Position numbers and translations under genes: made by a program. A stretch of 64,000 bases of DNA from Bugula neritina (lineage: Eukaryota > Animalia > Bryozoa), in contig OZ037773.1 in the NCBI GenBank assembly GCA_964035545.1, positions 10,815,869 through 10,879,868 of the forward strand. The letters run 5' to 3'. The first letter of the stretch is position 1. The number at the start of each line of letters is the position of its first letter. The notes below the pieces were generated by a model. The model had not been told where the DNA came from. It saw nothing but the letters and a program-made list of their open reading frames with translations, and did no database searches. Shown here piece by piece: positions 15,771-61,791 of the stretch.

Positions 15771-15897
15771 GCTGCTACTACTGCTACTACTGCTACTACT
15801 GCTACTACTACTACTACTACTACTACTGCTACTACTACTACTGCTACTACTGCTACTGCTACTGCTACTACTACTACTGCTACTGCTACTACTACTG

Positions 15898-15944
<47 letters not shown>

Positions 15945-23043: not shown

Positions 23044-23062
23044 ATGACGTTGAGAGCACGTG
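23044..23062 (+). promoter_or_regulatory. Composite CRE-half/E-box element ATGACG-N7-CACGTG
   Basis: ATGACG TTGAGAG CACGTG in a local CpG-rich patch. Confidence 0.55.
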
Positions 23063-25434
23063 ACCTGTTTCGTTCGACTAAAAGCAGACGACGCTGCAAG
23101 GACACTCATAATCAGAAGGACTGGCAGCGCTCAAAGTAGTGGTAATCACTGGTTTATTATATTTGGCAATTGTTTCATAAGGTGACTTGAGTTTTAAGCA
23201 AAAAGATGGGTTTTAGTTTGCTTTAAAATTGTCTTAAATTACACAAGACCAAGTGTCACTGTCAGGTGAGAGTTGAATTATATAGTTCATTAGTTGATCA
23301 TTACTAAGTGACTATCAGTATCATATTCATATTGATGTTGATGTCCATATTCATATTCATATTGACTATCACAGTATCACCATCAGTTACAATATCATAC
23401 TAACTATCAATATCACACTCAATCTCATACTCATACTAAGACTATAAGTCATAGTCTTAGTCATACTGATTCTGGCTATCAGATATCAGTATAACTATAA
23501 GTATGATATTGAGTATCAGTATCAGTATGACTATGAGTATTATTTTTACTTTTATTACTATTACTATTAGTATAAGTAATACTATAAGTATGAGTATGAC
23601 TCTGAGTTTGACTATCATCATCAGCATTAGTTTTAGCAAATGTAATATTACTGTTATGTATTACAGTTTTAACTGATGCATTATAATTATTTAATTTTAA
23701 CTATTTAATGTTATAGTTATTATGATTTGATGACAATACTAATTGCTATTTACTATTTGCTTTTACTTTTAGTATTTTACTATTTACATCTATTTCTAAT
23801 TTAAGTTGTTGTCAAACATTAGCTGCTAAATAATTATATGGAAAATAATTATACACATTAAAATTATTAATATTATTCGAAGTGCATAATTTAAAACAAG
23901 TTAATGATATAAATATAACTATATTATAAAATACAATTAATATAACCAAGTTATAGTATAATGCTATAAGCTATAATAGAAACTATTGTTATAGCGTATA
24001 GTCATAATTTTAAATAATAATAGTTTTAAATTATAGACTTCAAATTGCTTAGATGTTTGACTTATAACTCATAATATTTATTATATTTTATATCCAAACT
24101 AAGTTATTAGTTAGCACAAATGTATTCTATTCTCACCTATCTCTGCTTTGTCCTGTTCCGATATACCCGCAAAAAACTATATAGTAGTCCCTGTCCCTGT
24201 GAGAAAGCCCCTGATGGAAGAGGTTTTTGTTAACTCAGGCTAAGAACGTATTAGCTCAAATTTATTACCTGTTTTATAATTTATAAATTGATGTTTTTAA
24301 TGATGTATTCTGGTATTAAATATTACTATAGTATAAATATTAAACAGCAAATACTATAACTTGTTGCTTATAGTAACAATTGCTATCATATTATTATTAT
24401 ATAAACTTTCTCCTATATACTGGTAAGCTTTCTAAGAATAACTATCTGGAGCAAATTTGTAGGTTTTATTTTGCACTGCGATTGCCAATTGATAATGCAT
24501 TGATGTATTGCTATATCCTGAACTACTGCAGAGAACTTATTACTTGAGCAACTTCTGATTTAGACTATGAATAAAGATGGTTCTCTCTTGTATTATAGCC
24601 ATTAAATATGTTCATACTTGTTTAGAGTAACATCACTTCGTATTGTAGTAACATCTATAACATATGATTTGTAATATGATGCATTATTTTTCCTTAAACT
24701 TGTGATGTCCCTTGATTCAAATATATTTTTATCTACCTAAATGTAGCTTTTAATATATTAAAAAATCAAATAATATTGTAACTAAAAATTTAAAAGTTTA
24801 TGAAGCAGTTTATAATTAAATAAGAAATTATAACTATTATTTGCTACAAATTATTATTTTAACAAATCATAAATGGTGGTTAATACTTGTATTTATTAAC
24901 AAAAAATTAGTAATACAAAAGTATTTTATAATAAGCAGTTTTAGAAAGTCAGTTTTACTTTAAAGCAGTCAGTTGTAGTGTGCCTTGGTTCATTTATTTA
25001 TTTTTGTTGTTGTTTTACAGGCTTTCATTGAAATAACTGTTTATGGAATTCAAAATTTTAAGATTTTTCAGCATTTCACTCTGTTATCTGCAAATATCTC
25101 CATAAATAGCAACAAGTTATCTTGTTTGATGTACTCTACATAGTTTGACTGTTTGAAGCAAAGCTGCAAGTAATTGCAGTGTAGCTGTGCTGCATTTCAA
25201 CGCTTTCTTTTAATAAATTCCTGTGTTACAGCTTTGATTTGTTATAGCAATGATATAATTTGTTTCAAATGTAAATAATTGATTTATAATTACGTAGTAC
25301 CTTTAAAATGTAAAGTGTAAAATAAAGCGGAATTCCAATCTTTGCATTCATATAATTTTAACGATCTATTCATAGTAATACAACAGTACTATATACACTG
25401 CTGTCTGCAGCTCCCTAGCCGGCAAGTTCTCTGT

Positions 25435-25453
25435 ATGACGCACCAATCACGTG
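25435..25453 (+). promoter_or_regulatory. Composite element ATGACG-N7-CACGTG heading the left-arm unit
   Basis: ATGACG CACCAAT CACGTG, followed by a donor CAG|GTAAAG at 25692/25693. Confidence 0.55.
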
Positions 25454-25962
25454 ACCTGCTCTGGACGACTTGACGCAGTAGCTGCGGACACTGCCTTTCC
25501 ATGAAGGTGAATGAATGCGTACGGGTGCCCGTACGGATTACATCGAAGAAAAAACCACACCTTCCTATATGCAACCCATACAAAGTTATCTTCTCTTTGA
25601 AATTGTAACCGCTGAACTGGCAACTGTTCCAATTTTCAGCAAGAGAGGTGTCAACTTGTGCTAAATTTAACTTTCAAACTCATACATGCCAGGTAAAGTT
25701 TTAATTGAACGTGATCGTGTCTTAAGAGAAAGAGTTGTGAGTATCCCTGAGTAATTCTCGGACTTTCACTTTATGGCGGTCATATCAAGTTCTCTTAAGT
25801 ATGATGAAAAATGGAATATTCAGTTTAAGCTGCTGTAACTAAAACAAGTTATGTTTCTGATTCAAAGAAATTTCTTTCCTGGTTCTGTAGACTATATTGA
25901 TTTTGTCATGATAAAAATTTTCAATACTCTAGATTTTACAGTCTATAATTTGTCTCATACAG

Positions 25963-25998
<36 letters not shown>

Positions 25999-28900
25999 CG
26001 CACGCACACACACTTCAAATGTAAATTTCCAATACTCTAGATTTTAGAGCCTATGCCTATATGAGTTGTCTCATACATGTCTGTCATTTATTCAAAAATT
26101 TTAATTTGTCAAATGTCTTTGTTTTTTAGAATGTTTTCGAGCAGCTCAGATATTCACACATTAGAGAACAAATGGTTTTCACCAGGAAGATAGGACCTAG
26201 CCAACTGTGGTCAGTTCTGAGAGTCCCATCTTGATTATAATTAGGTATTTATTATTTATGATAACTTACTGTGTTTTCAATTTTACAGGATTATAAGGAA
26301 AGAATTATCTTGTACTTCTTGTATTTTTCTTGATAACTGATGTCCATAATTCACGTATATCTATTTCTGTTTGAAGTAGTGAAAAAGTTATGTATTTTTC
26401 ATTATTTTAGTCTTGTTAACTCTAAGTCTTGTGGAATTTGTTCAAGTTAAACACTTGTAGTTATTAGACTAATATCCCAGCTCTGCAAACATTTACTATT
26501 AGCAAATTAAAATGAAATGTTTTATATATTAAGATAGTCTAGATTATTTCTTGTCTGTTTTATAGTTGTGTTCAACCACATGCAGATGGAAGTCACCTTG
26601 ATATCAAGACCAGTTTTATATCTGTGAAAGGCTCACAAGCCACATGTAGAAGTTGTCTTCTCTCCATGTTTGATTCATCTAAACTTTCATCTGTTCAGGT
26701 TTGTGTCTAAATGAATTCTTTATTGTAACAATATTTACTCTTTCCCTGTGTTATGTGCTATTAGATTTTGGCATTCATAAAGCTACTACCAGTGCATGGC
26801 AATGAGGTGAAATCAGTTGACCAATATCTGCTCCTTAGTAGTTTTATTCTAGCTCCTAGAGGATAGCTACTCTCATAAATGACGTTAGATTTAGCTTCTT
26901 CTATACCCTTCCCTTGGACAAAGTTTAATTTAAGATAAGCATAACAAGCGTTACTACTCAAATAGTGAAGCATGTGCTTTTGATAAAAGTGGCAATATAA
27001 TTGTATAAAGTGTAGAATATATAACTTTGTAAAGTTGTGCACATAGAACTGTATAGAGTGGTGATTAAAATGCAACTGTGTGAGTGTGGCACATAAAATA
27101 TTTATACTATATGTCCTGTTAGCTATGAACTCCACTGTTGATTGATTTTGCAGTGTAACACTTGGCTGTTTTTCTGCTTTTAGTTTTAAAAAATTATGGC
27201 TGTTTATTTCATTCAAGAATTTCCAAATGTGTTTCTAATAAAAGTTAAAACAGCCCATTGTAAAGGCTCCTACAAACCTTACCCAGCTTTAGCTATGTAT
27301 GTAACCTTCCTGGCTCAAACCCAGTGTTAGTTTGTTTCACTTACAGGCTACTGATGGCTGCTTCATAATATTCGTTCTGGATGGTTTGGTATTAGTTGGA
27401 GTTGTTTGATCTCCACTTGACCTGAGCTGTTTTCAGACTGAGGTGAACTACATACTACTCTATTTGAAGTGTGAGGTAGCCGGTTATTACACCTTTTGCA
27501 TGTCTAATTTTTCAGTAGTGCGTGTTGGAATTTTTGTATCTGTATCACCTGTGATGAAAAGTAGACTTAATTTCTGTCAACATAAAACATATAGCCAGGA
27601 GAATATGAGCTCAGTAGAAGTGAAAATATATGCATCTTCTCCTTGTTTGTCTGAATGTCAATACAACATTTGACCTAAGATATGAGAAATCAGCACATGA
27701 TTAGAATTTTATTTTAAGATTTTACTTTTTATGGTAATGAAATTATTGCCTTCATTGAACACCATCAATAAGTAATTTATTTGACTTTGGAATTGTTTAA
27801 GCTGTTTCATGTAAATGCTATAACTACGCCTTATTCCAACTAAATGAGCACTCTTCAATCATATTTATTGTTTTGTCAATATATTGCTATAACTGTGTGA
27901 AAAGCTCTTATTAAATAATATAAGTTTACATAGTGCTATGCTTGCTTGTGGTAAGAAAACCAAGTCAGGCTTTCATTTTAGATATTTTATTATGGTTCTG
28001 TCAACAAATCATGTTTTTTATTTAAATAATTATGACATTCTTCTATACATCTATACATAAATAAGAATATGAATTTTCTTTTGTACTTCTCCATTTTGCT
28101 TCTGTTGCTTTCTTTACCACTGTTATATAAATTAAGCATTTTATTTCATTGTTTTTCATGATATGCGACTCTGCTTAAATATAGACTGCTTTATTTTTAC
28201 AGTAGCTGGTGTGATGGTCACATGGTCAGCTACTGGACAACCAACCGTTTGGGTGTAAAGTTGGACAAAGTCATTCTAGATTATTCTTCACATGTGCCAG
28301 CTGGATGAGCTATACGGAGGTAATTCCTGTTGTTTTTAATATATAGAGATATTTATTGTAGCAGTCTAAAAGAAAGTAGCGATGTAAAAGCCTTTACATC
28401 ATAAGTTGTAAGCGCAGTTGCAAGACGCAAGCTTAAAGATAGATGAAAATACTGGGTTGTTATACCAGTCAAAAAGGTCAGCTATTGTGTAGTAGCCGTA
28501 ATGAGTGTCGGAAAATCGTAATATAGCTTGCATAGCTGTAATAATACATGAAAAGCTATAATGCATTAGGGAAAAGCTTTCCCAACTTATGTAAAGTCCC
28601 AACAGTTCCTATTAAGTATAACACGAATCCTTGATTAAACTACTTACAATAGAATTATTTGAAAACTTTTAATTAATCACAATTTAACCAGTAAACAGTT
28701 TCAAACTTTTCATCGAGTTATATTTTCAATAATTACAATTAAAAGTTGCACTAAAGTTGAACTGATATATTATTTTACTTCTCTGTGAGTGGATATGACT
28801 TGGATGCTTTATGTGCCTCAACTTTACCTGATTATACATACCTGTGGTGGTTGATGTCTACTTTTATATCATAATTATATTATTTTACCCCAATCAGCTA

Positions 28901-30090
28901 AATATTCCAATTTTAAATTACTATAGGGAATAGGTTTTAGCAGTAGCAGATTAATTCAGCTAAAGTCTCACATAACTTAACTATATACCTCTGGTATTAT
29001 GCATTATACAATGTACTTATTTTCTGTAGTCTCTAAAACTAATTTTTGATGCTTCAACTAAATTTGGTTGCTTTAAAGTCACTTTTATTGTGAATGTCTG
29101 CTTTGATTTCTCTATATAATTGTTGGTGTGCCATGCATGGCTTTAAAGCTGTAAACACTGTTTTACGTTTCACAAAATATATATTGTTGTATCCTATATT
29201 ATCATGATGTTAGTTATAAAAAAATTTCACTTGTCAAAAAGTGGTAATTTATATAGTTGATAGTCATGAAAAGGGGGAATATTAGGAAAAGGTTGGGAAT
29301 TCGTGTGTTATATGTTTCTACTGCACTTTAAGGGAGAAAATATGTTGTTCGCATCAACCATCCTGCATAACCCATTGGCTGTTGAAATTTGGGCATACGT
29401 GCTTTTACAGGTACACTGTAAGGCATGAAAATTGTTTGGACAGTACATGAGCATGGAAAGCTTTTGTTGAATCATTAAAGCTTTGATTTTATTAACATAG
29501 CTATGTTAGCTACATTAGGCTATGTTAGCTACATTATGTTTTCTATGTTGTGTTATTTGCTTGTTTTGGCTATTCCAGACAAAAGCTATTTTCTAGACTA
29601 ATATAAACCCTGCACTTTCGGCTCTCTCTTCATTCAGTCTTTGGAAACGCACATCTCTCTTCAAGCAACAGGAACTAACTTGAGAGTTGGTTGTTTTAGA
29701 AATGCTCACCTTTCATCTGAAGGATTTAAAGCACCAAAGGCTTACAGTACATACAGGCTAATATATAAGGTAAGTTTCATTTTTCATTTATTGGTGCACA
29801 CAATTTATTTGATGAAGATTAGTTAATAAATTCAGTTTGAGACAAAGTTGTTAGTGGATTAGGTGTTATTTATGTTCAACAATTGCTATGGTCATAATAA
29901 AAATAGGAAATGTTAGTTGCGAAGTATTGAGTTTACACAACTACCATCTCTAAATAATTGTGTTTTAGGATGGAATTACCCTTGGGGTGGATACCATGGC
30001 TACATAATATACGTGTCAGTTTGAGACGGAGGGAACACACCAGCGAGGACTACAGCTGTCGTCTCTACCCCTTCACCTGTGCTACAAGTG
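25454..30090 (+). ncRNA. Putative multi-exon non-coding (or decayed coding) transcription unit, left arm
   Basis: AG..GT-bounded, GC-richer cassettes: A 26130-26244, B 26566-26698, C 26765-26806, D 27347-27442, E 28203-28319, F ending 29769 (AAG|GTAAGT), G 29969-30090. A, D and E have stops in all three frames. No expression evidence. Confidence 0.45.
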
Positions 30091-33000
30091 GTGAGACAGT
30101 ACTGCTCCTATAAATACTACTAGGTGTGGTGAGACAATGATCCACCTACTTATGATTTTTTTTCTTGAACTAGAACAGGCCATTCCACCACTAGTAGTTA
30201 TTGCGAATTCAATTGCAAAGCTAGAACGACTTGGCTATATAGCAGGCTACAATAGTTAGCTATTAAGCCTTTATTTTAAGCTATTTATAGCAAGCAGATG
30301 ACAAATACAATTAGTAATCAGTATTCTATTATAAGGCATAAACCCATAAGGTAGCTATTTTGTATTGCATTATATTCAAATTTTGTTCTTTTGATAGTTT
30401 ATAGTGCTGTAGCTTCACTGAATAATGATATTTCTTGTATTTATGTTTTGTATTACTGTCAGTTGGTCATGTGTTATATAGTTGACATTGTTTAATAGAT
30501 TTCACAGTTAGAAATAAAAGATAAGTCCAGCCTCCCAGGCCCAGTAGTTTATTCAGTGGCAAATGAGCATTAGACTCTACTTAAGGTCATAAGTCTTGAC
30601 AATGAAAATTTTATACTACTGTTGCAGTGAGCCCACTAACTCTCGAGACTGTCATGGTTGCCTTTCTGTATTATATATCCTGAGGTTTTACCGGATGATA
30701 AATTTAACTGACAGTTGGTAATACTATTAATTCAAAGACATGGCAACTAACTCTAGGAAGTGAATTAACTTTAGTAATGCTGGTTTGGATTATACTTGTC
30801 ATAATTCAATATATTCTGTTTGTAGAATCTCTATAGAAGCATCTATTCTTCACCTGCTGCTCAGCACAAAGTTACGGCCAACCCAGCAGATGCTTTTCAT
30901 TTTAGCCAATATATCCAGCCTTGGACTCTAGCTATAAAGTGGCTTGTGCCATGATACCGACATTAGTTCACAGGCGCCTTTTGCAGCAGGATATATTTTA
31001 ACATGGTTTTTTGAAATGATGGACCAACCGCTGCACCATACTATAACTATATGCATTTTATTAAATGTTTTTAGGCTTGCAGATATTGTTATTATTATAT
31101 ATAATAATTTTGCCTTGTTTCATAATCATTATTACAACATTTTCTATGGTGTTTTTGAAAGTAATTTATTTGATTTGTTTTCAAAAGCGACAATAAATGT
31201 AAGGTGTTATGCCAAGTGGGATTGTTGGTCTTCTTGTCTGCAAAGAAAAATTGACAGGATATCACTTATCACTTATCACTTATCACTTATCACTTATCAC
31301 TTATCACTTATCACTTATCACTTATCACTTATCACTTATCACTTATCACTTATCACTTATCACTTATCACTTATCACTTAGCACTTATCACTTATCACTT
31401 ATCACTTATCACTTATCACTTATCACTTATCACTTATCACTTATCACTTATCACTTATCACTTATCACTTATCACTTATCACTTATCACTTATCACTTAT
31501 CACTTATCACTTATCACTTATCACTTATCACTTATCACTTATCACTTAGCACTTAGCACTTAGCACTTAGCACTTAGCACTTAGCACTTAGCACTTAGCA
31601 CTTAGCACTTAGCACTTAGCACTTAGCACTTATCACTTATCACTTAGCACTTATCACTTATCACTTATCACTTAGCACTTAGCACTTAGCACTTAGCACT
31701 TAGCACTTAGCACTTAGCACTTAGCACTTATCACTTAGCACTTAGCACTTAGCACTTATCACTTATCACTTATCACTTATCACTTATCACTTATCACTTA
31801 GCACTTAGCACTTAGCACTTAGCACTTAGCACTTAGCACTTAGCACTTAGCACTTAGCACTTAGCACTTAGCACTTAGCACTTAGCACTTAGCACTTAGC
31901 ACTTAGCACTTAGCACTTAGCACTTAGCACTTAGCACTTAGCACTTAGCACTTAGCACTTAGCACTTAGCACTTAGCACTTAGCACTTAGCACTTAGCAC
32001 TTAGCACTTAGCACTTAGCACTTAGCACTTAGCACTTAGCACTTAGCACTTAGCACTTAGCACTTAGCACTTAGCACTTAGCACTTAGCACTTAGCACTT
32101 AGCACTTAGCACTTAGCACTTAGCACTTAGCACTTAGCACTTAGCACTTAGCACTTAGCACTTAGCACTTAGCACTTAGCACTTAGCACTTAGCACTTAG
32201 CACTTAGCACTTAGCACTTAGCACTTAGCACTTAGCACTTAGCACTTAGCACTTAGCACTTAGCACTTAGCACTTAGCACTTAGCACTTAGCACTTAGCA
32301 CTTAGCACTTAGCACTTAGCACTTAGCACTTAGCACTTAGCACTTAGCACTTAGCACTTAGCACTTAGCACTTAGCACTTAGCACTTAGCACTTAGCACT
32401 TAGCACTTAGCACTTAGCACTTAGCACTTAGCACTTAGCACTTAGCACTTAGCACTTAGCACTTAGCACTTAGCACTTAGCACTTAGCACTTAGCACTTA
32501 GCACTTAGCACTTAGCACTTAGCACTTAGCACTTAGCACTTAGCACTTAGCACTTAGCACTTAGCACTTAGCACTTAGCACTTAGCACTTAGCACTTAGC
32601 ACTTAGCACTTAGCACTTAGCACTTAGCACTTAGCACTTAGCACTTAGCACTTAGCACTTAGCACTTAGCACTTAGCACTTAGCACTTAGCACTTAGCAC
32701 TTAGCACTTAGCACTTAGCACTTAGCACTTAGCACTTAGCACTTAGCACTTAGCACTTAGCACTTAGCACTTAGCACTTAGCACTTAGCACTTAGCACTT
32801 AGCACTTAGCACTTAGCACTTAGCACTTAGCACTTAGCACTTAGCACTTAGCACTTAGCACTTAGCACTTAGCACTTAGCACTTAGCACTTAGCACTTAG
32901 CACTTAGCACTTAGCACTTAGCACTTAGCACTTAGCACTTAGCACTTAGCACTTAGCACTTAGCACTTAGCACTTATATGAAAAGAGAAAAAAAACTGCT

Positions 33001-36000
33001 GTCATGCATGCAAAGTGAACTGAGAAGTGCAGTATGAAAGGGGAACAGTGTGGAAAAGGTTGGTAGTCACTGCACTAACCTTTCCTGTCGAGATTTGTTT
33101 TGTCTTAAGGTCTGATGTAATCTTTTGTGTTGTTAACGCAGAGGTCAATGCAGGTACCTGGGCCGATGTCATTGAATATTCCAACACCAGCTTAACCTGG
33201 CTCAAACTACAAAAGTTTCAAGACTTTAAAGAAAGCATACCGGAGTACAACAAATTTGATCCGGAAAGAGAAAAGTGAACTGCTATAAGAGGACAGCAAA
33301 ACAGGACAACAAGAATTATAACAAAGAGAAGAGAACAGGACAACAAAGTTACTAGAATGATTTCTACATGCTACATAACACATTTCGAGTACCTACATGT
33401 TCGGTTTCTATCCATTCTAAAGAGAGCCATAGCAATTAGGGAGCAGGAACCCACGGTGCTGCAACGTACGACGTCAGAGGATCCATGAGGGCATATGGTG
33501 GAGAGTTTGGGGCCTATAGGGTCCACTCCAAGAAGTAGAGACTAAAGACAGCATGCCAGCTTATCAGCAGTAGATGTTTGGTGCCATAATATGTATCATG
33601 GAGCGATTCTTGCTAGCTATCACAGTATCTTCTGTAGCCCTGGTATCCATGCCCAGGATAACTCTATCCTAGAACACAGTCAATAGATGCAAGTCATGTA
33701 AACTCAATACTTCAGCAACCAACATTTCCTATTTTTATTATGACCATAACAATTGTTGAACAATAATAACAATAACCCCTAATCCACAAACAACTTTGTC
33801 TTAAACTGAATTTATTAACTATTTTTCAACAAATGAAAAATGAAACTTACCTTATATATTATCCCACATATAGTTGTGCCAGTACTGTAACCTTTTGGTG
33901 CTGTAAAACCCTCAGATGAAAGGTGAGCATTTCTAAAATAACCAACTCTCAAGTTAATTCCTGTTGCTTGAAGAGAGATGTGCGTTTCCAAAGACTGAAT
34001 GAAGAGAGAGCCGAAAGTGCAGGGTTTTTATTAGTCTAGAAAATAGCTTTTGTCTGGAATAGCCAAAACAAGCAAATAACACAACATAGAAAAGCATAAT
34101 GTAGCTAACATAGCCTAATGTAGCTAACATAGCTATGTTAATAAAATCAAAGCTTTAATGATTCAACAAAAGCTTTCCATGCTCATGTACTGTCCAAACA
34201 ATTTTCATGCCTTACAGTGTACCTGTAAAAGCACGTATGCCCAAATGTCAACAGCCAATGAACTATGCAGAATAGTTGATGTGGACAACATATTTTCTCC
34301 CTTATAGTGCAGTAGAAATATATATAACACAGGAGTTACCAACCTTTCCCTAATATTCCCCCCTTTCATGAATATTGACTATTAATTTCCCCCTTTTGAC
34401 AAACTGTGAAAATTTTTATAACTGGCATCATGATAATATAGGATACAACAATATACATCATATGAAAAGTAAAGCAGTATTTACAGCTCTAAATCCTGCA
34501 TGGCACACTAACAACTATCAAGACAAACATCCACAATAAAAGTGACTTTAAAAACAACAAAATTTAGTTGAAGCATCAAAAACCAGTTTTAGAGACTATA
34601 GAGAATAAGAACATTGTATATAATGCATAGTACCAGAGGCATATAGTTTAAATGTGAGACTTTGGCAGAATTAAGCTGCTACTGGTAAAACCCATTCGCT
34701 AGTAATTTAAAATTGGAAAATTCAGCCCATTGGGGTAAAATAATATAATTAGGGTATAAAAGTAGACATCAACCACCAAGGTTATGTATAATCAGGTTAA
34801 GATAAACCGCATAAAACATCCAGGCCATACCAACTTATAGAGAAGCAAAATAATATATCAGTTCAACTTTAGTGCAACTTTTATTTGTAATTATTGAAAA
34901 TATAACTCGATGAAAAGTTTGAAACTGTTTACTGGTTAAATTGTGATTAATTAAAAGTTTTCAAATAATTCTATTGTAAGTAGTTTAATCAAGGATTCGT
35001 GTTATACTTAATAGGAATTGTTGGGACTTTACATAAGTTGGGAAAGCTTTTCCCTAATGCATTATAGCTTTTCATGTATTATTACAGCTATGCAAGCTAT
35101 ATTACGATTTTCCGACACTCATTACGGCTACTACACAATAGCTGACCTTTTTGACTGGTATAACAACCCAGTATTTTCATCTATCTTTAAGCTTGCGTCT
35201 TGCAACTGCGCTTACAACTTATGATGTAAAGGCTTTTACATCGCTACTTTCTTTTAGACTGCTACAATAAATATCTCTATATATTAAAAACAACAGGAAT
35301 TACCTCCATATAGCTCATCCAGCTGACACATGCCAAGAATAATCTAGAATGACTTTGTCCAACTTTATACCCAATTGGTTGGTTGTCTAGTAGCTGACCA
35401 TGTGACCATCACAGCAGTTACTGTAAAAATAAAGCAGTCTATAATTATGTGGTGTTGCATATCACGAAAAACAATGAAATAAAATACTAAATATATAACA
35501 TATTTTATAAAAACATTATTGAAGAAAGCAACAAAAGTAAAAATGGAGAACAACAGGGGGGAATTCACATTTTTTATTGATGTATAGGTGTACAGAAGAG
35601 TGTCACACTTGATTGATTTAAAAAAATGATTTGCTGCAAGAGCCATAACCAAAAATCAAAAATGAAAACCTGACTTCGTTTTCTTACCACAAGCAAGCAC
35701 AGCACTATGTAAACTTATATTTTTTAATAAGAGGTTTTCACACATTCAGCAATAAATTGACAGAACAACAAATATGATGGAAGAGTGCTCATTTAGATGG
35801 AATGAGGTTTAGTAGCATTTACAAGCTCCGAAATCAAATGAATTACTGATTGATGGTGTTCAATGAAGGCAATGATTTTATTAACATGAAAGTAAAATCC
35901 TAAAATAAAATCCCAATCATGTGCTGATTTCTCATCTCTTCAGTCAAGTTTTGTATGGAGCTAGGGTAAGGTTGGCAAGAGCTATTACAATAGGCTGTTT

Positions 36001-46652: not shown

Positions 46653-46671
46653 CACGTGATTATTGGGGCAT
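46653..46671 (-). promoter_or_regulatory. Degenerate composite element ATGCCC-N7-CACGTG
   Basis: The minus-strand downstream sequence (CACGTGATCAGTTACAGACGACTGAGCA) resembles 25448 onward; a donor AAG|GTAAAC follows at ~46523. Confidence 0.45.
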
Positions 46672-47509: not shown

Positions 47510-50500
47510 TTAGTCCCAACTCTGACTACTGTTTGCAGGTAAACATTGAAATACTTGTTCACATGTGTTGGGGCAGGTCATGGTCATGAATTACTAGACA
47601 ATCTGTATAGCATTAGGTTTACTATAAGATGTGTATACTGTCACTGCCTGATAAAACAACATTTGTCAATAATAATTTTAAATAGCATATAATATTTAGG
47701 ATTAGGTAATTTTTTACTTAAAGCAATCTCATATTTCTAAACACTCGTAGTTCTCAATAATTTAAACAGATATTAAAAATACATCAAATTTGAATATTTG
47801 GTAAATAATAGTAAGAGAAGTAGAGGCTATGATATAACAACAGAGAACAATTACAGGACTGGAGAAAATAATGAGTTGAAATAATACATACCACGGACAG
47901 ATACAGATGAGGATTACAGGGATGGGAAGAATAACACAGAGAGAAATTGTACAGGTTGCTGTTCCTCTGCCCATTCTGTAACACAAAAAATAGCAAATAA
48001 ACTTGTTCAAAATACACTAGAAAAAAGGAAGCAATAGAAACATCACCTGTAGAATTTTTTCCTCCAAACTGACAAATTAATAAGTAGATTCCAAGCATTC
48101 AGAAAACACTCAACACTATCTTAACACTGTAGAGGTATATATTATATCTAAAGTTTCTAAGTGGTTAAATGATTGAACCAAAATCAAACTTCTAATATAA
48201 GTAGGAAATCTAGTAACCTAATGAGTTTAGTATAAAACAGTATAAATTTACAGCTCTAAAACCTGCATGGTAAACCAACAAGTCAAAACATCAAGGCAGA
48301 CATTCACAATAAAAGTGACTTTAAAACATTGAAATTTAATTGAAGCATGAAACATGTTTTTTTAGAGAATACACTATAGAAAATAAGTATGTTGTATAAT
48401 GTATAGTAGGAGAGACTTTGACAGAATTACACTAGCTGCGCCCAAGTTAACACCCAAATGCTAGTCATTCAAAATTGGAATATTCAACAGATTGGGGTAA
48501 AATAATATAATTAGGGTATAAAAGTAGACATCAATCACCGAGGGTACATATAATCAGGTAAAGATAAATCGCATAAAACATCCAAGCCATACCAACTTAC
48601 AGAGAAGTAAAATAATATATCAGTTCAACTTTAGTGCAAATTTTATTTGTAATTATTGAAAATATAACTTGATGAAAAGTTTGAAACTGTTTACTGGTTA
48701 AATTGTGATTAATTTAAAATTCCCCGAATAATTCTATAAGTAGTTTAATCAAGGATTCATGTTATACTTAATAGGAATTGTTGGGACTTTACATAAGTTG
48801 AGAAAGCTTTTCCCTAATGCATTACAGCTTTTCATGTATAATTATTACAGCTATGCAAGCTATATTACGATTTTCCGACACTCATTACGGCTACTACACA
48901 ATAGCTGACTTTTTTGACTGGTATAACAACCCAGTATTTTCATCTATCTTTACGCTTACAACTTATGATGTAAAGGTTTTTACATTGCTACTTTCTTTTA
49001 GACTGCTACAATAAATATCTCTATATATTAAAAACAACAGGAATTACCTTCATATAGCTCATCCAGCTGACCCATGTGAAGAATAATCTAGAATGACTTT
49101 GTCCAACTTTATACCCAATTGGTTGGTTGTCTAGTAGATGGCCATGTGACCATCACACCAGTTACTGTAAGAATAAAGCGGTCTATAATTATGTGGTGTT
49201 GCATATCATAAAAAACAATAAAATAAAAATATACTAAATATAACTTATTTTATAAAAAATTATTGAAGAAAGCAAACAAAAGTAAAAATGGAGAACCAGG
49301 GGGGGGGGGAGGGGGAATTCTATTTTTATTGATGTATAGATGTACAGAAGAGTGTCATACTTAATAAATTCAAAAAAATGATTTGTTGAAAGAGCCATAA
49401 CCAAAAATCAAAAATGAAAGCCTGACTTGGTATTCTTACCACAAGCAAGCATAGCACTATGTGAACTTATATTTTTCAATGCCGGTTTTCACACAGCAAT
49501 AAATTGGCAAAATAACAAATATGATTGAAGAGTGCTCATTTAAATGGAATGAGGTTTGGTAGCATTTACATGAAACAGCTTAAACAGCTCCAAAATCAAA
49601 TGAATTACTTATTGATGGTGTTCAATGAATACAATGATTTTATTAACATGAAAGTAAAATCTTAAAAATAAAATTCCCAACCATGTGCTGATTTTTTCTC
49701 TCTCCAGTCAAATTTTGTATAGAGCTAGGGTAAAGTTGGCAAGAGCTATTACAATTATAGGCTGTTTCAACTTTCATTAGAAGCATGTTTGGCAATTCTT
49801 GAATGAAATAAACAGCTATAACTTTTAAAGCTAAATAAAACGACAGAAAAACAGCCAAGTGTAGAATTAATCAACAGTGGAGTTCATAGCTAACAGGACA
49901 TATAGTATGAATATTTTTGTGTCACACTCTATACAGTTCTATGTGCACAACTTTACAAAGTTATATATTCTACACCTTATACAATTATATTGCCACTTTG
50001 ATCAAAAGCACATGCTTCACTATTTGAGTAGTAACAATTGTTATGCTCATCTTAAATCAAACTTTGTCGAAGGGAAGGTAGAAAAAGCTGAATCTATCAT
50101 CATTTACGAGAGTAGCTATCCCCTAGGAGCTAGAATAAAAGTACTAAGGAGCAGATATGGGTCAACTGAGTTCACCTCATTGCCATGCACTGGTAGTAGC
50201 TTTATGAATGCTAAAATCTAATAGCACATAACACAGGGAAAGAGTAAATATTTTTACAATAAATAATTCATTCAGACACAAACCTGAACCAATTGAAGGT
50301 TTTGATGAATCAAAAACAGAGAGAAGACAACTTCTACATGTCAGCTTGTGAGCATCTCACAGATATAAAACCAGTCTTGATAACAAGGGATTTTTATCTG
50401 CATGTGGTCAAACACAACTACAAAACAGACAATAAATATTCTAAACTACCTTAATATATAAAACATTTTATTTTAATTTGCTAATACAGTAAATGTTTGC

Positions 50501-53500
50501 AGAGCTGAGATACTAGTCTACTGACTACAAGTGATTAACTTGAACAAATTCACAAGACTTGGAGTTAACAAGACTAAAATAATAAATAAAACATAACATT
50601 TTTACTACCACTTCAAACAGAAATAGATATACATGAATTATGGACATCAGTTGTCAAGAAGAATACAAGAAGCACAAGATAATTCTTCCAATACATCGTG
50701 TAAAACTGGTAAAATTGAAAACAGAGAAAATTATCGTAAATAATAAATACCTGATTATAACCAAGAGGGGGCTCACAGAACTGACCACAGTTGACTAGAT
50801 CCTATCTTCCTGGTGTAGACCAAATGTTCTCTAATGTGTGAATATCTGAGCTGCTCAGAGACATTCTAAAAAACAAAACACATCTGACAAATTGAAGTTG
50901 TTGAATAAATGATGACAGACATGTATGAGACAAATATAGACTGTAGAATCTAGAGTATGGGAAATTTGTATCATGATAAAATCAACTTAATCTACAGAAC
51001 CAGGAAAGAAACTTCTTTGAATCAGAAACTTTTTCAGTTGAAACAACGTAAACTGAATATTCCACTTTTTAATTTCAAGGAATGATTATGACTATAATAT
51101 GAGTATGTAACTGAAATAAAGTCAAACAAATTGAATTATCGGGTAGGAATTAGAATTTATTGCACAGTTATGGCTATTTTGAAAAGAAAATTTGATTTCA
51201 ATTATGAGCCATACAGTACAGAGTAGCAAATCAATGAATTAAAATCTTAATCTTGTACATGTGGTGAGCAAGCCAACAGCCGCACTATTACAGAACGGTC
51301 ATTGTAAAATGTTAGTGTAAATATTTGTGCGAAGTTTAATACTCCTGCAGAGGGCTTGATATAGAATCACAAAAATTATGTCTAATGAAATCATATATCA
51401 CAACAAAATAACGTAATTATTAAAACAGCATTATATTAATAGATAAATTAACCATCCCTTCAGTGTGAATCACAATTAATTAAGGCAAGCAGATAAAATC
51501 AAGCTGAAGACAGGTCTATTGTAAAATGAAAAATTTATAGTACGAAAATGGAAAAAAAACTGTAAACACTGAAATAAAAATAAAATATGATACCAGCAAA
51601 AATGGCTTGGCATATTATATAATTAGTGGTACAGCAGCACCAATATTATGCTTAGACAAGAAATTATCTCAAAGGATAAATTTTCAATAAACTAAAGAAA
51701 TGAGCACTGACTCACTGCATCAACTATTAGCTAGAAAACCTATATCAAACTAAAAGCAGTAACAGATAGGGTGCTAAAATGTATAGCTCACTATTTGTAG
51801 TATTACTAACATTATTATTCTTAGTATTGATTTTGTGGTTTAGTTCAGCAACCCAGAGGAAAACAGGGTAGAATTGTTACCTTGAAATCAAGCCAATTTA
51901 AAGCCAAGCTAAATTGAGATTCATTATATAAGCCTTGCAGCTGCATTTACTCAATTGAGTGCTTTAAATATTTGTTTTTGTTTTTGGAAATTTTTTAAAA
52001 GTTCTTAAACTTGTTTATTGAGCTAAAACATATAAAACACTATAAATTAAGCTCATGAATTACAACCATGTTCAGTGCCAGTGAGATGCACAGAATAAAA
52101 AGTGTCCATCATTAAAACTGTAATTAAATCAAGTTTATGTTGATAATCAAATAAAATTTGTTCAATTAAACAATGTGAAAACCCGTAACAAAGGGCAAAA
52201 AACTGGGTGAAATCATCCGCAACTACCCTCTGTAAACATATAATAATATGGGCCACACCTCCTACTGATAAGTAGCATAATCATGGACAACGCCCTAAAA
52301 TCGCCGCTCTCATATCGATCATCTCTGGGGTGAGGTTGGCAAACGCTTTTACAATAGGCTGATCTAACTTTTATTAGAAACACATTTGGCAATTTTTGAA
52401 TGAAATTAACAGCTATAATAACTTTGAAAACAAAATAAAACGACGGAAAAGCAGCCATGTGTTACGGTAGTGTTAATCAACAGTGGATTTCATAGCTAAT
52501 AGAAGCAGATATAGGTCAACTGAGTTCACCTAACTGCCTAGCACTGGAAGTTTTACTAATTCCAAGTGTTGGTAGTGAAGGTTAGACAACACAAACTTAA
52601 TGAAAGGAAGAGTTAATATTGTTGCAGTAAGCAATTAATTTAGACGCAAACCTGAACTGATGAAAAGTTTTGATTAATGAAACACAGAGAGAAGACAACT
52701 TCTATGTGTCGGCCTGTGAGCATCTCATGGATATAAAACTGGTCTTGATATCAAGGTATAGCTTCTATCTGCATGTGGTTAAACACAACTACAAAACAGA
52801 CAAAAAATATTCTAAACTACCTTAATATATAAAACATTTTATTTTAATTAGCTAATAGTAAATGTTTGCAGTGCTGGGATACTAGTCTAATGACTACAAG
52901 TGATTAACTTGAACAAATTCACAAGATGTCAAGTTAACAAGACTAAAATAATAAATAAAACATTACTTTTTCACTATTAAAGATGAAATAGATAAACATA
53001 AATTATGGACATCGGTTATAAAAAATAATACAGAAAGTACAAGATAATTAATTCCTAATATCCTGTTAAATTGGTAAAATCAAAAACACAGAGCTAATTA
53101 TCATAAATAATAAATACCAAATTATAACCAAGATGGGGCTCTCAGAACTGACCACAGTTGGCTAGATCCTATCTTCCTGGTGTAGACCAAATGTTCTCTA
53201 ATGTGTGAATATCTGAGCTGCTCGGAGACATTCTAAAAAATGAACACATTCGATGAATTAAAATTGTTGAATAAATGATGACAAGACATGTATGAGACAA
53301 CTTACAGACTGTAAAATAAAGAGTATTGGATATTTACATGGTGATAAATTTTCATTATGATAAAATCAGCATAGTCTACAGAACTAGGAGAGAAACTTCT
53401 TTGAATCAGAAACACAACTTGTTTTAGTTGAAGCAGCTTAAACTGAATATTCTACTTTAACTTTTGAATTTCGATCCATGATTATGACCATGATGAGTTT

Positions 53501-56500
53501 GTAACTGAAATAAAGTCAAACGAATTAAACCATTGGGCAACAGTTAAACTTTATTATACTGGTAAGGCTGTAGTGAAAAAAATTAAAACATTTGATTTCA
53601 ATTATACTATTATTCACAGGATTGATTTTGTAGTTCAGTTCAACAGACCAGAAAAGAACAGGGTAGAAGTTGTGTTGAAATTAAGCTAATTTGAAGCTAA
53701 GCTAAATTGAAATTCATTATATGCCTTGCAGTTGTATTTACTCAAATGACTGCAGAATCAAATTGACAAAAAATGAGTGGCAGCTTATAAATTGAATAAA
53801 ATATTCAATTTGAATTCCAAGCCTATGAATGAATACAGATTAACAAACAGTTTACTAAAGACAGTACAAAATTACTAAATGACGTGCTAAATAAAGGATT
53901 ACTTTGGTAAGATGACCAAACAGTTTCAGTTGCTGGACCAGTCAGTTTGAAGGGCAACTTAGTAATGACAGTGCAGAAATTGGCAGAAATTGAACAGGTG
54001 AGCTAGAAAAACTGCTTGATCTAGAAGCTATTCAGGTGAATGATGAAAATAAATGTTGCAACTTGTGATTTGACTTTTGGAATTTTTATGGAGCTTTATC
54101 ATCCTTCTAACCATTCACCATTAAATCACTAATTTCTCTTATCGTATGCAACTAGATATTAGCATGAGGTTAGGGACCTACAGCAAAAGGCCAGGGTTTC
54201 GCTTGCCCCTGCTTAGTCCCAACTCTTGCTTACTCCCAACGCTGACTACTGGTTGCAGGTAAACATTCAACTACTTGTTTGAAATGTGTTGGGGAGGTCA
54301 TGGTCATGAATTACTAGACAATCTGTATAGCATTAAGTTTACTATAATATGTGTGTACTGTCACTGTATGCCTGATGAAATAAATTTTATGGACATTAAT
54401 TTTAAATAGTAGGAATTTGAGATAAAGTAACTTTAGAAAATAAAGATTTAAAATAAAACATACCACGCGGACAGATAAAGATGAGGCTTACAGGGAAGGG
54501 AAGAATAACATAGAGAGAAAAAGAGTACAGGTTGCTGTTCCTCTGCCCATTCTGTAACACAAAAAATAGTAAATAAACTTGTTCAAAATACACTAGAAAA
54601 AAGGAAGCAATAGAAACATCACCTGTAGAATTTTTTCTATCAAATTGACAAATTTACTAGTAAATTCCAAGCATTCAGAAAACCCTCAACACTATGTTAA
54701 CTCTGTAGAAGTATATATTATATCTAAAGTTTCTAAGTGGTTAAATGATTGAACCAACATCAAAATTTTCTACTCGTATAATACAGATGTGTGATACAAA
54801 TAGGAAATTTAGTAATGTAATGAGTCTTGTGAAACAGTATAAATTTACAGCTCTAAAATCAACGTCGCAAACCAACAATTCAAAGAATCAAGACAGAAAT
54901 TCACAATAAAAGTAGCTTTAAAACAATAAAATTTAGTTGAAGCATGAAACACCAGTTTTAGAGAATATAGAAAATAAGTATATTGTATAATGCATACTAT
55001 GAGAGACTTTGACAAAATTACGCTGTACGTGCCACAGTTAACCCTAATTTGCTAAAAATTCAAAAGTGCAACATCCTTAGCTGACTGAAACTGAAAACTT
55101 GGACATGCGAAAGTAATAACCGGCTAACCTCACACTGCAAATAGAGTAGTATGCAGTTCATCTCAGTCTGAAAATAGTTCAGGCCAAGCAAAGATCAAAC
55201 AACTCCAACTAATACCAAACCACCCAGAAGGAATATTATGAAGCAGCAATCAGTAACCTGTAAGTGAAACAAACCAACACTGGGTTTGAGCCAGGAAGGT
55301 TTCAGAGATATATATCTAAAGCAAAAAAAGTTGCAAAGATATGTAAATGATATCTTTATACGAAGCTAGGGTGAGGCAAAGGTGATCTATATGAGAGTGG
55401 CGACTTTAGGGAATTATGGGGACATCATTATGCAGAATTCTGCGCTGCGATGTTTATATAAGTTAAAAAGGGAAAATTTTGTCACTTTTTTATTTCATTA
55501 TTATTTCTATTTTATGTGTACAATTTTTAATTTTATTTATTGCTATAGTTTTTAAACACATTCTTTATGCATATAAAATTAAAAACAAGTTTAAAACTCA
55601 CTCACTAATAATTATGCATGTGTAGCTTAATATATTGACAATAGAAAGCCCAAAGTTATTCAATTTAATTTTAAATAGCATAAAGAAATTTATTTGAATT
55701 AAATTCTTGAAAATTATTGTTATTTGAACTATTTTAAAAAGTTTTATCTAATACTAAGTTCACACCTTTTAAGCCATAAAAACAATCATTAAATAATTCA
55801 TTGAGTGCTTTAAATATTTTTTTTGGTTTTGGAAATTCTTTAAAAGTTCTTAAACTTGTTTATTGAGTTAAAACATATAAAACACTATAAATTAAGCTCA
55901 TGAATTACAACCATGTTCAGTGCCAGTAAGCTGCACAGAATAAAACGTGTCCATCATTGAAACTGCAATTAAATCAAGTTTCTGTTGATAATCGAATAAA
56001 AATTGTTGAATTCATTTATAATTTTTATCATAAATCTTTAGGGAAAACATGCAAAAAAGGACAAAAAACTCAGTGAAATTATCACGCAACAATCCACTGT
56101 AATTACATAATAATATGAGGCACACCTCCTACCAATAAGTAGCATAATGGCGGACAACGCCCTAAAACTGCCACTCTCATATCGATCATCTCAGGGCGGA
56201 GGCTGACAAGAGCTTTTACAATAGGCTGTTTTAACTTTTATTAGAAACATGTTTGGCAATTTTTGAATGAAATTAACAGCTACAACTTTTAAAACAAAAT
56301 AAAACGACAGGAAAGCAGCTATGTGTTACGGAAGTGTTAATCAACAGTGGATTTCATAGCTAATAGGAGCAGATATAGGTCAACTGAGTTCACCTAACTG
56401 CCTAGCACTGGAAGTTTTACTAACTCCAAGTGTTGGTAGTGAAGGCTAGACAACACAAACTTAATGAAAGGAAGAGTTAATATTGTTGCAGTAAGCAATT

Positions 56501-57893
56501 AATTTAGACGCAAACCTGAACTGATGAAAAGTTTTGATTAATGAAACACAGAGAGAAGACAACTTTTACGCGTTGGCTTGTGAGCATCTCATGGATATAA
56601 AACGGGTCTTGATATCAAGGTATAGCTTCTATCTGCATGCGGTTAAACACAACTACAAAACAGACAAGAAATATTCTAAACTACCTCAATATATAAAACA
56701 TTTCATTTCAATTTGCTAATAGTAAATGTTTGCAGATCGAGCTGAGATTCTAGTCTAAAGAGTACAAGTGATTAACTTGAACAATTCCACAGGACTTGGA
56801 GTTAACAAGACTAAAATTATGAATAAAAGATAACATTTTAACTACTTCAAACAGAAATAGATAAACATGAATTATGGACATTAGAATACAAGAAGTACAA
56901 AATAATGATTTGCCTAACATCATTTAAAATTGGTGAAATTGAAAACAGAGAAAATTATTGTAAATAATGAATACCTAATTATAACCAAGATGGGGCTCTC
57001 AGAACTGACCACAGTTGGCTAGGTCCTATCCTCCTGGTGAAAACCATATGTTCTCTAATGTGTGAATATCTGAGCTGCTTGGAGTGATTCTAAAAAACAA
57101 AACACATTTGATAAATTAAAATTGTTGAATAAATGATGACAGATATATATGAGACATCTCATAGGTCCTAAAGTCTAGAGTATTGAAAATTGTATCATGA
57201 TAAAATCAACATAGTCTACAGAACCAGGAAAGAAACTTCTTTGAACAAGAAATATAACTTGTTTTTTTATAGTTACAGCATTTTAAACTGAATTTATTCC
57301 ACTTAAACTTTTCAATTTCGAACCATGATTATGACCATGATGAGTATGTAACTGAAATAAAGTCAAACAAAATAAATCATTCAGCATAAGTTGAACGTTA
57401 TTATAGCAAGAAAAAAATTAAAATATTAGATTTCAATTATACTATTATTCTTAGTATTGATTTTGTAGTTCAGTTCAACAGACCAGAGTAGAACAGGGTA
57501 AAAGTTACGTCAAAGTCAAGCCAATTTGAAGCAAAGCTAAATTGAAATTTATTATAACTATAATTATAAGCCTTGCAGTTGCATTTACTCAAATGACTGC
57601 AGTATCAAATTGACTAGAAATGGGTAGCAGTCTATCAATTAAATAAAATAATCAATGTGAAATCCAAGCCTATGAATAAATACAGATCAACGATCAGTAA
57701 ACTAAAAGATAGCGTTGATAAAAAGTTATTAAATGACATGCTAAACAAAGGTTTAATTGTTTACCTTGGTAAGATGACCAAACAATTTCAGTTGCACGAC
57801 CATTCACTATGAAGAGCAACTTACTATAATGACAGTGCAGCAGACGTGCTCAGTCATCCGTAACCAATCATTGCTCAGTCGTCTGTAACTGAT

Positions 57894-57912
57894 CACGTGA
57901 TTATTGGGGCAT
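57894..57912 (-). promoter_or_regulatory. Second degenerate composite element ATGCCC-N7-CACGTG
   Basis: Duplicate of 46653-46671. Confidence 0.45.
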
Positions 57913-60900
57913 GCGCTATGTCTCATGACTCACTTCCAATGGTGTTACCAAATCATCGATCTGTATGCAGCAAAAAGAGCAATACTAATTTTAGTGCCTA
58001 AAATTCCAACTGGACTTCATGTTTCGCAAGGTATAATATGAAGGGAAAACAGAGATGTAGCAATCAAATACTTTTAACAATTTGTCTTCTTTAAGCAGCA
58101 TTATCATGCAATCATGTTTAGGGCAAAAACAAACAGGAAAAGAATTCACTATGCCAAATTAACCATCAAGAAAACAAACACAATTTAATGACCCAAAAAG
58201 ACATAAAGAAATTGAACATGCAGGTGAGCTCAAGAAACTGCTTGTTCTAGAAGCTATTCAGGTGAATAATGAAAATGAGTGTTGCAACTTGGAATTTGAC
58301 TTTCGAAATTTTTATGGAGCTTTATCATCCTTCCAACCATTCACCATTAAATCACTAATTTCTGCTATTGAATGCAACTAGATATTAGCATGAGGTTAGG
58401 GACCTAAAGAAAGAGGCCAGGGCTGTGCATGCATTTGCTTACTCCCAACTTTGACTACTGGTTGTGGGTGAACATTCAACTATATAGTTGTTTGAAATGA
58501 GTTGGGGCAGGTCACAGTCATGAATTACTAGACAATCTGCATGTATAGCATTAAGTTTACTATAATATGTGCCTGATAAGATAACACTAAACTAGAATAA
58601 TTTTAAATAGCATGATATTCAGGATTAGGTAATTTTTTACTTAAAGCAATCTCATATTTCTAAACACTTGTAGCTCTCAATAATTTAAACAGATATTAAA
58701 AATACATCAAACTTGAATATTGTTAAATCATAGTAAGAGAAGTAGAGGCTATGATATAACAACAGAGAGTGATTAAAGAACTAGAAAACAAAGATTTACA
58801 ATAGAAAACTAGAACTAGAAAATAAAGATTTAAAATAAAACATACCAAGAACAGATACAGATGAAGCTTACAGGGATGAGAAGAATAACACAGAGAGAAA
58901 AAGAGTACAGGTTGCTGTTCCCTACACATCCTGTAACACAAAAAATAGTAAGTAAACTTGTTCAAAATACAATAGAAAGAAGGAAGCTTGATTTATGGCA
59001 ACAGAAACATAACCTGTAGAATTTTTTCCTCCAAACTGACAAATTAATAAGTAGATTCCAAGCATTCAGAAAACACTCAACACTATGTTAATACTGTATA
59101 GGAGTATATGTTATATCTAAAGTTTCTAACTGGTTAAATGATTAAACCAACATCAAACTTCTCTACTCATGCATATAATACAGATGTATGATATAAGTAG
59201 GAAATCTAGTAACGTAATGAGTCTTGTGAAACAACTTAAAGAGAAGTAAAATACTATATCAGTTTAACTTGAGTTCAACTATAATTGGTAATTCTTGTAA
59301 ATACAACTTGATGAAAAGTTTGAAACTGTTTACTTGTTGAATTGTGATTAAATGAAAATTTGTGAACAATTCTATAGATAAATAGTTTCATCAAGGAGAC
59401 ATGTTATACTTCATAAGTATTACCTCCATATAGCTCTTACAGCTGACACATGCCAAGAATAATCTAGAATGACTTTGTCCAGCTTTATACCCAATTGGTT
59501 GGTTGTCTAGTAGCTGACCATGTGACCATCACACCAGTTACTGTAAGAATAAAGTAGTTTATAAAAATGTGGTGTTGCATATGATGAAAAACAATGAAAT
59601 AAACATAAAATTCTAAATACAGCTCATTTATTACAACAGCAGTAGAAAAAGCAAAAAAAATGAGAAATGGAAAAATACAAAACAATCACATTTAATCTTG
59701 AAGATTAATCATTACTCAAATAAGTAGAAGAGTGTCATCATGCTTAATTAAGTTGAAATATGATTTGTTGAAAGAGCCATAACCTGATAAATAATAAAGC
59801 TAAACATAGTTACCAAGTGAGAACAAAATACTTCCCTAGTCTGGAGGCTGCGGAGTCACAATAAACTGATCAAACTATTCTTACTGACAGAGCAGACAAT
59901 TTGCAAGTGTGAGCCTTTGAATATCATATTCCAAGAAAGTGAGAGAAGACAACTACATTAGGAGAGTTCAGGAAAACAAAAGAAGACAACTTCGTAATGG
60001 AACTTCGAGAAAACAAGAGAAGACAACTACGTTAGGAGCAAGCAGCAAGCTGCACAAATTCCCATTAGCAGAGTTAGCCGATAATAAAATTATAACATTA
60101 TTGATTATTAAAAACACACAATAGAATAGATATGTAACTATACAGGGATGTAGATGATATTTAGAAAAGACTGCAAGTTTCCTCTACAAATAACTAGAAT
60201 ATTCAAAATGTGAACCAGAAATTTAAACAGATGGAAAATTTGGTATGTTTTACAATATTAGATAATATGTAAAATGGGGTTTGGGGTTTGAACTGAAAAA
60301 CTGGAGAGAACTAACATAAAAATACTGAGAAGAAACAAACAACAGCTTTTACACAAATCTGAGAAAACGTGAACAAACAGAAATGGCAAAAGTGAAGCAG
60401 AGTGAAGTGAAAACAACAGTCATAAAAGCATTCTACTGCCTGCATGTGTTACTAATCTGAATACAGCAGATGAAGTGTTATATTAGGATCATTATTGACT
60501 TTGTAAACGCTATTCATCCAAATACAGTAGATTACAAGAAGCAGGTCGTAATGGTGAAAGTGATTGCCTCGAAATATTGAGTAGTGATTTAAAAAAATCA
60601 ACTTTGGCCAAATCTGAGCATGATCATGGTGTTTAAACAGTATGAAAATACTTAATAGGGAATGAGGGAAAAAATTGTCAAAACTAAAATTAATTTATTT
60701 TGAACTGAAAATGAGTTCACACTGACTAACTTAAATGAATGAAAAATAGGAACAAATTACCATTCTAATATTACATAAACTCGAGTATGAAAATACAAAA
60801 CAGATTATATTTTTATATTACTATTACCTATTTGTCATTAGTATAAAAACAAACACAACTAATGGAGTGAAATTTTTACTCTATTCATAACATCAATTTG

Positions 60901-61772
60901 AATGATGAATATAAATTTTCGTAGTCATATACTGATGGTAACAAAGTAGAATAGTAGTGATTATAATAATGAATATCAATATGCATAAAACCCAATTTCC
61001 AAGAGACTAGAACAAGTACTAAAACTAGACGAACGAATTACAAATAAAGACACCCAACTTGAAATAACATTTCATTACAATTATGACTAAATCACTAATG
61101 GTCATAGTCATGCTTATAAGTTACCAGTAGAGGTTTGAGTTGTGGGAAAATAAAATAAAACGGGAGCCCGGAAGAGAATAAAAACGAGAATAATAATCAA
61201 TATCATAATTTAAATTTAAATTATTATCATAATCATTAATAGGCATTGCAGTTATGATTGTAATTATTATAATAATACTAATAGTTGATATAATATTAAT
61301 AATGATAATCATCATCGACTTTTGTTACCTGTGGTTATCAATATCATATTGATATTTATTATGATAATAAAAACAAAAATGACAACTAATACTATAACTA
61401 TTAATATTACTCTCACTACAACTGTTAAGTGCAAGTATTTGTGTTAGTAATAGTAATACTAATAAGCTACTAAAACTACTAACAATAGTCACGTGAGCTA
61501 CTATTACTCTATAGTCTAATGGCATTACCCAAGTCATTAGCCTTAGTGTTACTATTACTAACATAATCTTAGTGATGAAGTTTAACATAAAATGAAAACG
61601 ATTAAAATTAAATCCAAGGAGCCGCGGCTTGAAATTTCATTGAACTAGCAGTTAATACAAACAAATTACCGCGACAGCGTTAAGGATTCTCTAGACAGAA
61701 CTTGCAGAAGACATCAATGTCGGTTCAGACGAATGAATGATGAATGGCAATCCAGTTAGGACCACGATTGAA

Positions 61773-61791
61773 CACGTGCTTGTTACGTCAT
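61773..61791 (-). promoter_or_regulatory. Composite element ATGACG-N7-CACGTG at the far right end of the array
   Basis: Plus strand reads CACGTG CTTGTTA CGTCAT in a CpG-rich patch. Confidence 0.55.

Follow-up and report, generated by a model that had tools for sequence, protein, structure and literature searches.

Human telomeric repeat-containing RNA (TERRA) has subtelomeric CpG-island promoters, the 61-29-37 repeats, for which binding of CTCF and NRF1 has been reported. Yeasts carry the X and Y' families of subtelomeric repeats, and fission yeast has subtelomeric transcripts that run centromere-ward (ARRET). RNA polymerase II proximal promoters contain E-boxes of the USF, MITF or TFE type (TCACGTGA) adjoining cAMP response element (CRE)/ATF sites. 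Here, the last 64 kb of a chromosome of the bryozoan Bugula neritina (C9:10815869-10879868, hereafter the window) were analysed for a short motif, ATGACG-N7-CACGTG or its variant ATGCCC-N7-CACGTG, which stands at five sites (s1 to s5) at the heads of repeat units and which an earlier note had read as a composite promoter of a basic leucine zipper (bZIP) and a basic helix-loop-helix leucine zipper (bHLH-ZIP) site under selection for fixed spacing. I consider it rather likely that the five sites are instead diverged copies of one ancestral ~100-bp promoter-like core that heads chromosome-end repeat units.

The window is a chromosome end, since it stops at the contig terminus (10879868) and other contig ends carry telomere arrays: among the large contigs C2-C9 of the 216.0-Mb genome, C2-C8 are capped by 7-10 kb of (CCCCAAA)n or (TTTGGGG)n, the former opening six left contig ends and the latter closing the right end of C8.

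The five motif sites

All five sites are present where the earlier note had placed them, the exact motif twice on the plus strand (s1, s2) and once on the minus strand (s3), with three different spacers, and the ATGCCC variant twice on the minus strand (s4, s5; Table 1). Shuffled sequence would yield 0.01 matches. As the pattern was picked after being seen, the window was also simulated six times under a first-order Markov model. By chance, some 1,700 6-N(0-20)-6 patterns recurred at least three times in the six simulations, and none of them held three or more CpGs, so the recurrence of the motif is not a chance event. Sites s4 and s5 lie within a duplicated segment of 94% identity (45355-47166 and 56597-58441) and therefore count as one event. 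The sites were also correctly described as sitting in scarce CpG-rich patches: at a CpG observed/expected ratio of 0.32, only 11 patches of the window reach 7 or more CpGs per 200 bp, and s1, s2, s3, and s4 occupy four of them.

Table 1. Coordinates of the motif sites and associated features; positions are those of the window unless a contig or fetched sequence is named.
Feature	Position	Strand	Remarks
s1, ATGACG-TTGAGAG-CACGTG	23044..23062	+	A-type core; single-copy, just outside the shared block
s2, ATGACG-CACCAAT-CACGTG	25435..25453	+	A-type core; CCAAT within the spacer; nearest relative C8:13314366
Dispersed repeat, ~130 bp	25488..25618	.	inserted 35 nt after the s2 E-box; C8 relative lacks the insert
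Subtelomeric block	26019..62429	.	colinear with ends of C2, C3, C5, C6, C7, and C8 at 80-95% identity
(CACTTAG)x245 array	31263..32976	+	between the unit arms at the convergence point; C7 right-end copy lacks the array
Candidate first donor, A/GTAAGT	46582..46583 (s5: 57823-57824)	-	putative; 68 nt after the E-box
s4 core, 47 nt	46631..46677	-	invariant in 9/9 copies; motif at 46653-46671
s5 core	57872..57918	-	duplicate of s4; motif at 57894-57912
Telomere-adjacent element	60905..62429	-	16-21 copies; + at left ends, - at right ends
s3, ATGACG-TAACAAG-CACGTG	61773..61791	-	within the telomere-adjacent element
A/T-only array, 7-nt units (AAATTTT-like), some 6-nt units	62463..64000	+	~1.5 kb, reaches the contig end
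Telomere arrays, (TTTGGGG)n	L001:1-8443; L004, L007, L009, L011, L013; L003:9201-10000		fetched chromosome ends

Common descent of the unit heads

The heads are of three types, A (s1 and s2), B (s4 and s5), and C (s3), and share a common descent. Over the 130 nt downstream of the motif, with the motif itself excluded, A-type sites gave z = 12.7, 9.3, 5.6, and 5.4 against shuffles, and alignment recovered a downstream block common to s1, s2, and s4/s5, which marks these sites as descendants of one sequence. The A-type and B-type cores share ~24 of the 30 nt that follow the E-box, reading CACGTGAYC, then GACGACT, then GCA. The C-type is tied to the other heads by the locus C7:33298, which joins the exact 19-mer of s3 to an s1-type flank. 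Many of the copies were compared through pattern matches, not full flanking sequence. A first alignment with flanks of ±300 nt detected no homology among s1-s4; it was set aside because flanks of this length dilute the signal, and homology does emerge from shorter segments downstream and from intermediate copies. The sites had been put forward as separate evidence of selection, but they are copies by descent (z = 5-13 over the downstream 130 nt within the s1/s2 type).

The A-type heads are found on the inner edge of the subtelomeric block or just beyond it, facing the telomere, and are single-copy by read depth in a DNA run; their relatives are at C8:13314366, C8:13188178, C3:32385142, C3:32409175, and C7:33298. 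At s1, a further CACGTG stands at 23029, and the homologous downstream block extends to ~23140. The stretch that follows (23300-23700) is low-complexity sequence with a summed contig k-mer depth of ~142,000, against ~90 for single-copy sequence in the DNA run, and is a very abundant simple repeat. The ~130-bp insert after s2 belongs to a repeat found on every chromosome, in 38 or more copies that are 87-92% identical, and contributes CpGs to the s2 patch.

The B-type heads the repeated centromere-ward units, with ~20 copies at 83-91% identity over 500 bp. The 26-nt block after the B-type E-box is tandemly duplicated in C8:13199453, and in s4 the second copy has decayed. At nearly every chromosome end, 0.5-0.7 kb separate the C-type motif from the telomere array; near s3, an inverted TGACGCA is found 6 nt upstream and a CCAAT at 61857.

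Location and polarity of the repeat units

The location of the heads is exclusively subtelomeric. When each of the unit heads and module 26023-27291, the most repeated one, were used as BLAST queries against the genome, almost all copies of heads and module fell within ~45 kb of the contig ends of C2-C9; the exceptions are on the unplaced contig C245, in the interior of C3 (17.85-17.88 Mb), and, for a few diverged heads, 150-360 kb from the right end of C8, among them 70-74% relatives of the s4 head at 150-210 kb. A transposable-element promoter or long terminal repeat was considered and rejected, as the unit heads are not dispersed over the chromosome arms and their copies are subtelomeric. 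The sites are best filed as conserved promoter-like heads of a subtelomeric repeat family.

Most other chromosome ends also have the block that carries the units, and its polarity with respect to the telomere is fixed; for instance, C3:10001-20000 matches window positions 60900-50929 at 94.7% identity. It consists of one telomere-ward unit (26019-30640) and five or six centromere-ward units (33600-62400). Copies near the telomere face the centromere, i.e., they are on the plus strand at left ends and on the minus strand at right ends, and the right ends of C5, C6, C7, C8, and C9 each have one inverted copy on the inner border of the block. The convergent orientation described in the earlier note, with s1 and s2 on the plus and s3, s4, and s5 on the minus strand, is thus correct, and since the layout of the block was copied as a whole, the inward-pointing sites are not five independent observations.

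Inverted arms of 87.6% identity (27661-30015 and 33621-35956) flank the convergence point. A full subtelomeric block including the telomere-adjacent element, in right-end orientation, is found at C3:17851888-17877438 in the middle of the 32.4-Mb contig C3, and may stem either from two chromosomes having fused end to end long ago or from a join made during scaffolding. On C245 (63523-76451), six telomere-adjacent elements are arranged in tandem with a period of ~2.5 kb, and all six carry the CACGTA variant.

Local constraint on the cores

Constraint on the heads is local. A 41-nt core around the s4 motif is identical in 17 of 20 copies and has a single mismatch in each of the remaining three, and no invariant run in a 1-kb alignment of nine B-type copies is longer than the 47-nt s4 core. 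This core contains GCGCATGC, a CCAAT, the E-box CACGTGA, an initiator-like TCAGTT, and GACGAC. All nine copies preserve the five CpGs between -3 and +66, while CpGs farther away have mostly decayed to TG or CA. These patterns bear on the view that the motif is functionless and recurs only because sequence was recently duplicated and converted between chromosome ends, as might be expected from a block that is shared as a whole between ends and from s4 and s5 being plain duplicates. Conversion tracts would not, however, be expected to be confined to 41-47 nt within flanks of 83-91% identity; in addition, CpGs survive only within the core, and the boxes persist where the flanks of relatives are down to 60-74% identity. 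I therefore regard a functionless by-product as very unlikely.

A promoter-like reading of the cores

The invariant core, the restriction of CpG protection to ~70-120 bp, the content of CCAAT, bZIP, and E-box elements, and the collapse of similarity after a GTAAGT together suggest that the cores resemble a protected CpG island with a proximal RNA polymerase II promoter and a short first exon. The GTAAGT of the candidate first donor is kept in a C8 relative of 71% identity, and similarity ends just after it. The first donors proposed earlier do have GT at their positions, but a 130-bp repeat lies between the s2 motif and its proposed donor, and for s4 and s5 the nearer GTAAGT at 46583 and 57824 fits the conservation better.

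The ancestral layout would have been a bZIP-type site ATGACG, 7 nt, a CACGTGAYC E-box, a GACGACT...GCAG block, and a GT donor 70-110 nt further on, with the B-type lineage later having swapped TGACG for the GCGCATGC element. Such cores would bind bZIP, bHLH-ZIP, and NRF1-like factors, and transcription would start just after the E-box in the direction from the bZIP site to the E-box, that is, centromere-ward for s3-s5 and telomere-ward for s1-s2. The products, if any, are probably non-coding subtelomeric RNAs. No long open reading frames were found in the window, and among paralogous copies, neither open-frame retention nor three-base substitution periodicity separated the strands or indicated coding.

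Several points weigh against common descent from one promoter-like core. Over the full 130 nt, A-type and B-type heads are only marginally similar (z = 2.5-2.8 in the shuffle test), and the homology of s3 depends on one bridging copy, direct flank alignment being non-significant. Local gene conversion could add to the invariance of the core. I infer promoter use, start point, and direction from sequence, and CACGTG itself is a palindrome, and promoters in CpG islands often fire in both directions. Furthermore, no downstream gene was detected: Pfam gave no match below E = 0.002 in 120 unit-strand open-frame pieces and 10 more, a search that very short or novel exons could escape, and Rfam at its gathering thresholds gave no match in the window. 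As a positive control, a 68-aa gelsolin exon of the same window was recovered by Pfam at E = 2.8e-07.

The failure to find a downstream coding gene would also suit cores that are not promoters at all and instead serve as boundary, insulator, or origin factor sites that organise subtelomeric chromatin. Parallels are known in the CTCF sites of human subtelomeres and the Reb1/Tbf1 sites of yeast subtelomeric elements, and the invariance of the cores, their retained CpGs, and their fixed position and polarity relative to the telomere could be explained in the same way. A consensus donor GTAAGT followed by a drop in conservation, on the other hand, fits a first exon, and CCAAT, E-box, and bZIP elements are typical of RNA polymerase II promoters, which makes the boundary function an unlikely one and leaves the promoter-like core as the preferred reading.

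Spacing of the two boxes

In 216 Mb, only eight loci have the extended form ATGACG-N7-CACGTGAYC, all of them in the repeat family of these heads, so that the earlier claim of a motif that heads the units and is specific to their family holds. The same claim came with the proposal of a strict 7-nt composite enhancer-promoter module of bZIP and bHLH-ZIP sites, whose spacing is selected through cooperative binding. In its favour, the eight family loci retain both boxes at N7 with seven different spacers, and between s1 and C7:33298, 4 of 7 spacer positions and none of 12 box positions are different, against ~12% of downstream positions. The conservation of these boxes is partly a search artefact, however, because the loci were retrieved by searching for the boxes. 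Conserved boxes around a free spacer are borne out for this pair of loci, while the fixed spacing is contradicted by N10 in relatives of s4 and s5.

N10 was found in at least five homologous heads. Among the BLAST relatives of the s4 head, it is present at C5:17684659, C7:15780965, C7:32457, and C3:17853169, and a further fetched relative, L002, carries ATGGCG-N10. In general, 70-74% relatives of this head read ATGACG-CAGCAATAGT-CACGTG (N10), ATGGCG-N10, or ATGACG-CAAAAGT-CACGTG (N7), so the N7 of s4 and s5 is the outcome of a 3-nt length change.

Nor are both boxes conserved as a composite, as had been claimed. TGACG is missing from all 20 copies of the s4 clade, the largest, and the ATGCCC of s4 and s5, which had been read as the counterpart of the bZIP box, is not a bZIP half-site; it is part of GCGCATGCCCC and forms the end of GCGCATGC-CCC, which I take to resemble an NRF1 site. 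In s3-type copies it is the E-box that is altered (CACGTA in 9/16, CGCGTG in 1/16), yet TGACGTAA is retained in 15/16.

The enrichment check proposed in the earlier note was run genome-wide. In raw numbers, 22 of 103 hits had N7 spacing and any other spacing had at most 7 (hand count). Collapsed by descent, these became ~5-7 independent N7 loci against ~3-4 for other spacings, so N7 leads in the raw count but is not clearly enriched, and outside the family no clear N7 excess is left once duplicates are collapsed. The other N7 hits belong to an unrelated six-copy repeat at C8:4.8-5.0 Mb, three single loci, and s3 copies. A strictly spaced module is accordingly improbable: the spacing was passed on by descent and varies, copies can lack either box, and ATGCCC represents another element.

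Other features of the window and the chromosome ends

The remaining seven CpG-rich patches of the window include four that are two regions doubled by a 9.25-kb tandem duplication and one that is a small inverted-repeat element. The tandem duplication (2115-11394 and 11364-20641) has 99.9% identity and is rich in minisatellites. Inside it, a gelsolin-repeat exon (9681-9884) contains two CACGTG and one CGTCA, i.e., TGACG on the opposite strand; this CpG-rich patch is coding sequence and not a promoter. The inverted-repeat element (47160-47520) is ~360 bp long with terminal inverted repeats of ~75 bp, constitutes the richest CpG patch (22 CpGs), and resembles a small foldback transposon that has inserted upstream of s4.

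TTTGGGG is a non-canonical telomere repeat for an animal, and a literature search on TTTGGGG telomeres returned nothing relevant. Close to their inner edge, the arrays contain the variant units GACCCCG, GACCCCA, and CCCCGAA. In the window itself, TTTGGGG was not found in the terminal A/T-only array, which begins 672 bp past the s3 motif, the position at which C3 and C8 have (TTTGGGG)n. Possible explanations for this array are mutation of a telomere, a satellite of another kind, and an artefact of reads or assembly.

Discussion

Lophotrochozoan subtelomeres are almost undescribed, and the block defined here is common to nearly all chromosome ends. Its three short, strongly constrained promoter-like cores offer targets for the study of telomere-adjacent transcription, whether TERRA-like or centromere-ward, beyond the usual models. 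The analysis also illustrates how what looks like a fixed-spacing composite motif in a single window can owe its existence mostly to duplication. An organised system of end transcription can be imagined, in which a conserved promoter 0.7 kb from each TTTGGGG telomere and non-coding units firing centromere-ward would meet one inverted telomere-ward unit, and in which the convergent transcripts and the 4-kb inverted arms would yield double-stranded RNA and, through small RNAs, silencing of the subtelomere; this is speculative and I give it little credence.

Among known systems, TERRA promoters offer a close parallel: like the cores, they are repeated, promoter-like islands rich in CpG that many chromosome ends carry no more than ~1 kb from the telomere array, and the s4 clade has the NRF1-like GCGCATGC. 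The sequences are unrelated, however, the telomere repeat is TTTGGGG, and in Bugula neritina the box order and the candidate donor suggest that any transcription would run away from the telomere. The yeast X and Y' families share with this block a mosaic structure common to chromosome ends, a fixed polarity, and factor-binding sites, which are predicted ones here; in contrast to them, the block is of unrelated sequence and belongs to an animal, it yielded neither a helicase nor any other open reading frame, and its units are headed by bZIP and E-box sites. Lastly, the heads resemble promoters of the USF, MITF, or TFE kind in having CACGTGAYC, mostly with a 5' T, beside TGACG(C/T)A and with CCAAT nearby. 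This likeness is one of sequence, and in contrast to such promoters, the pairing of the two boxes is not obligatory in this family.

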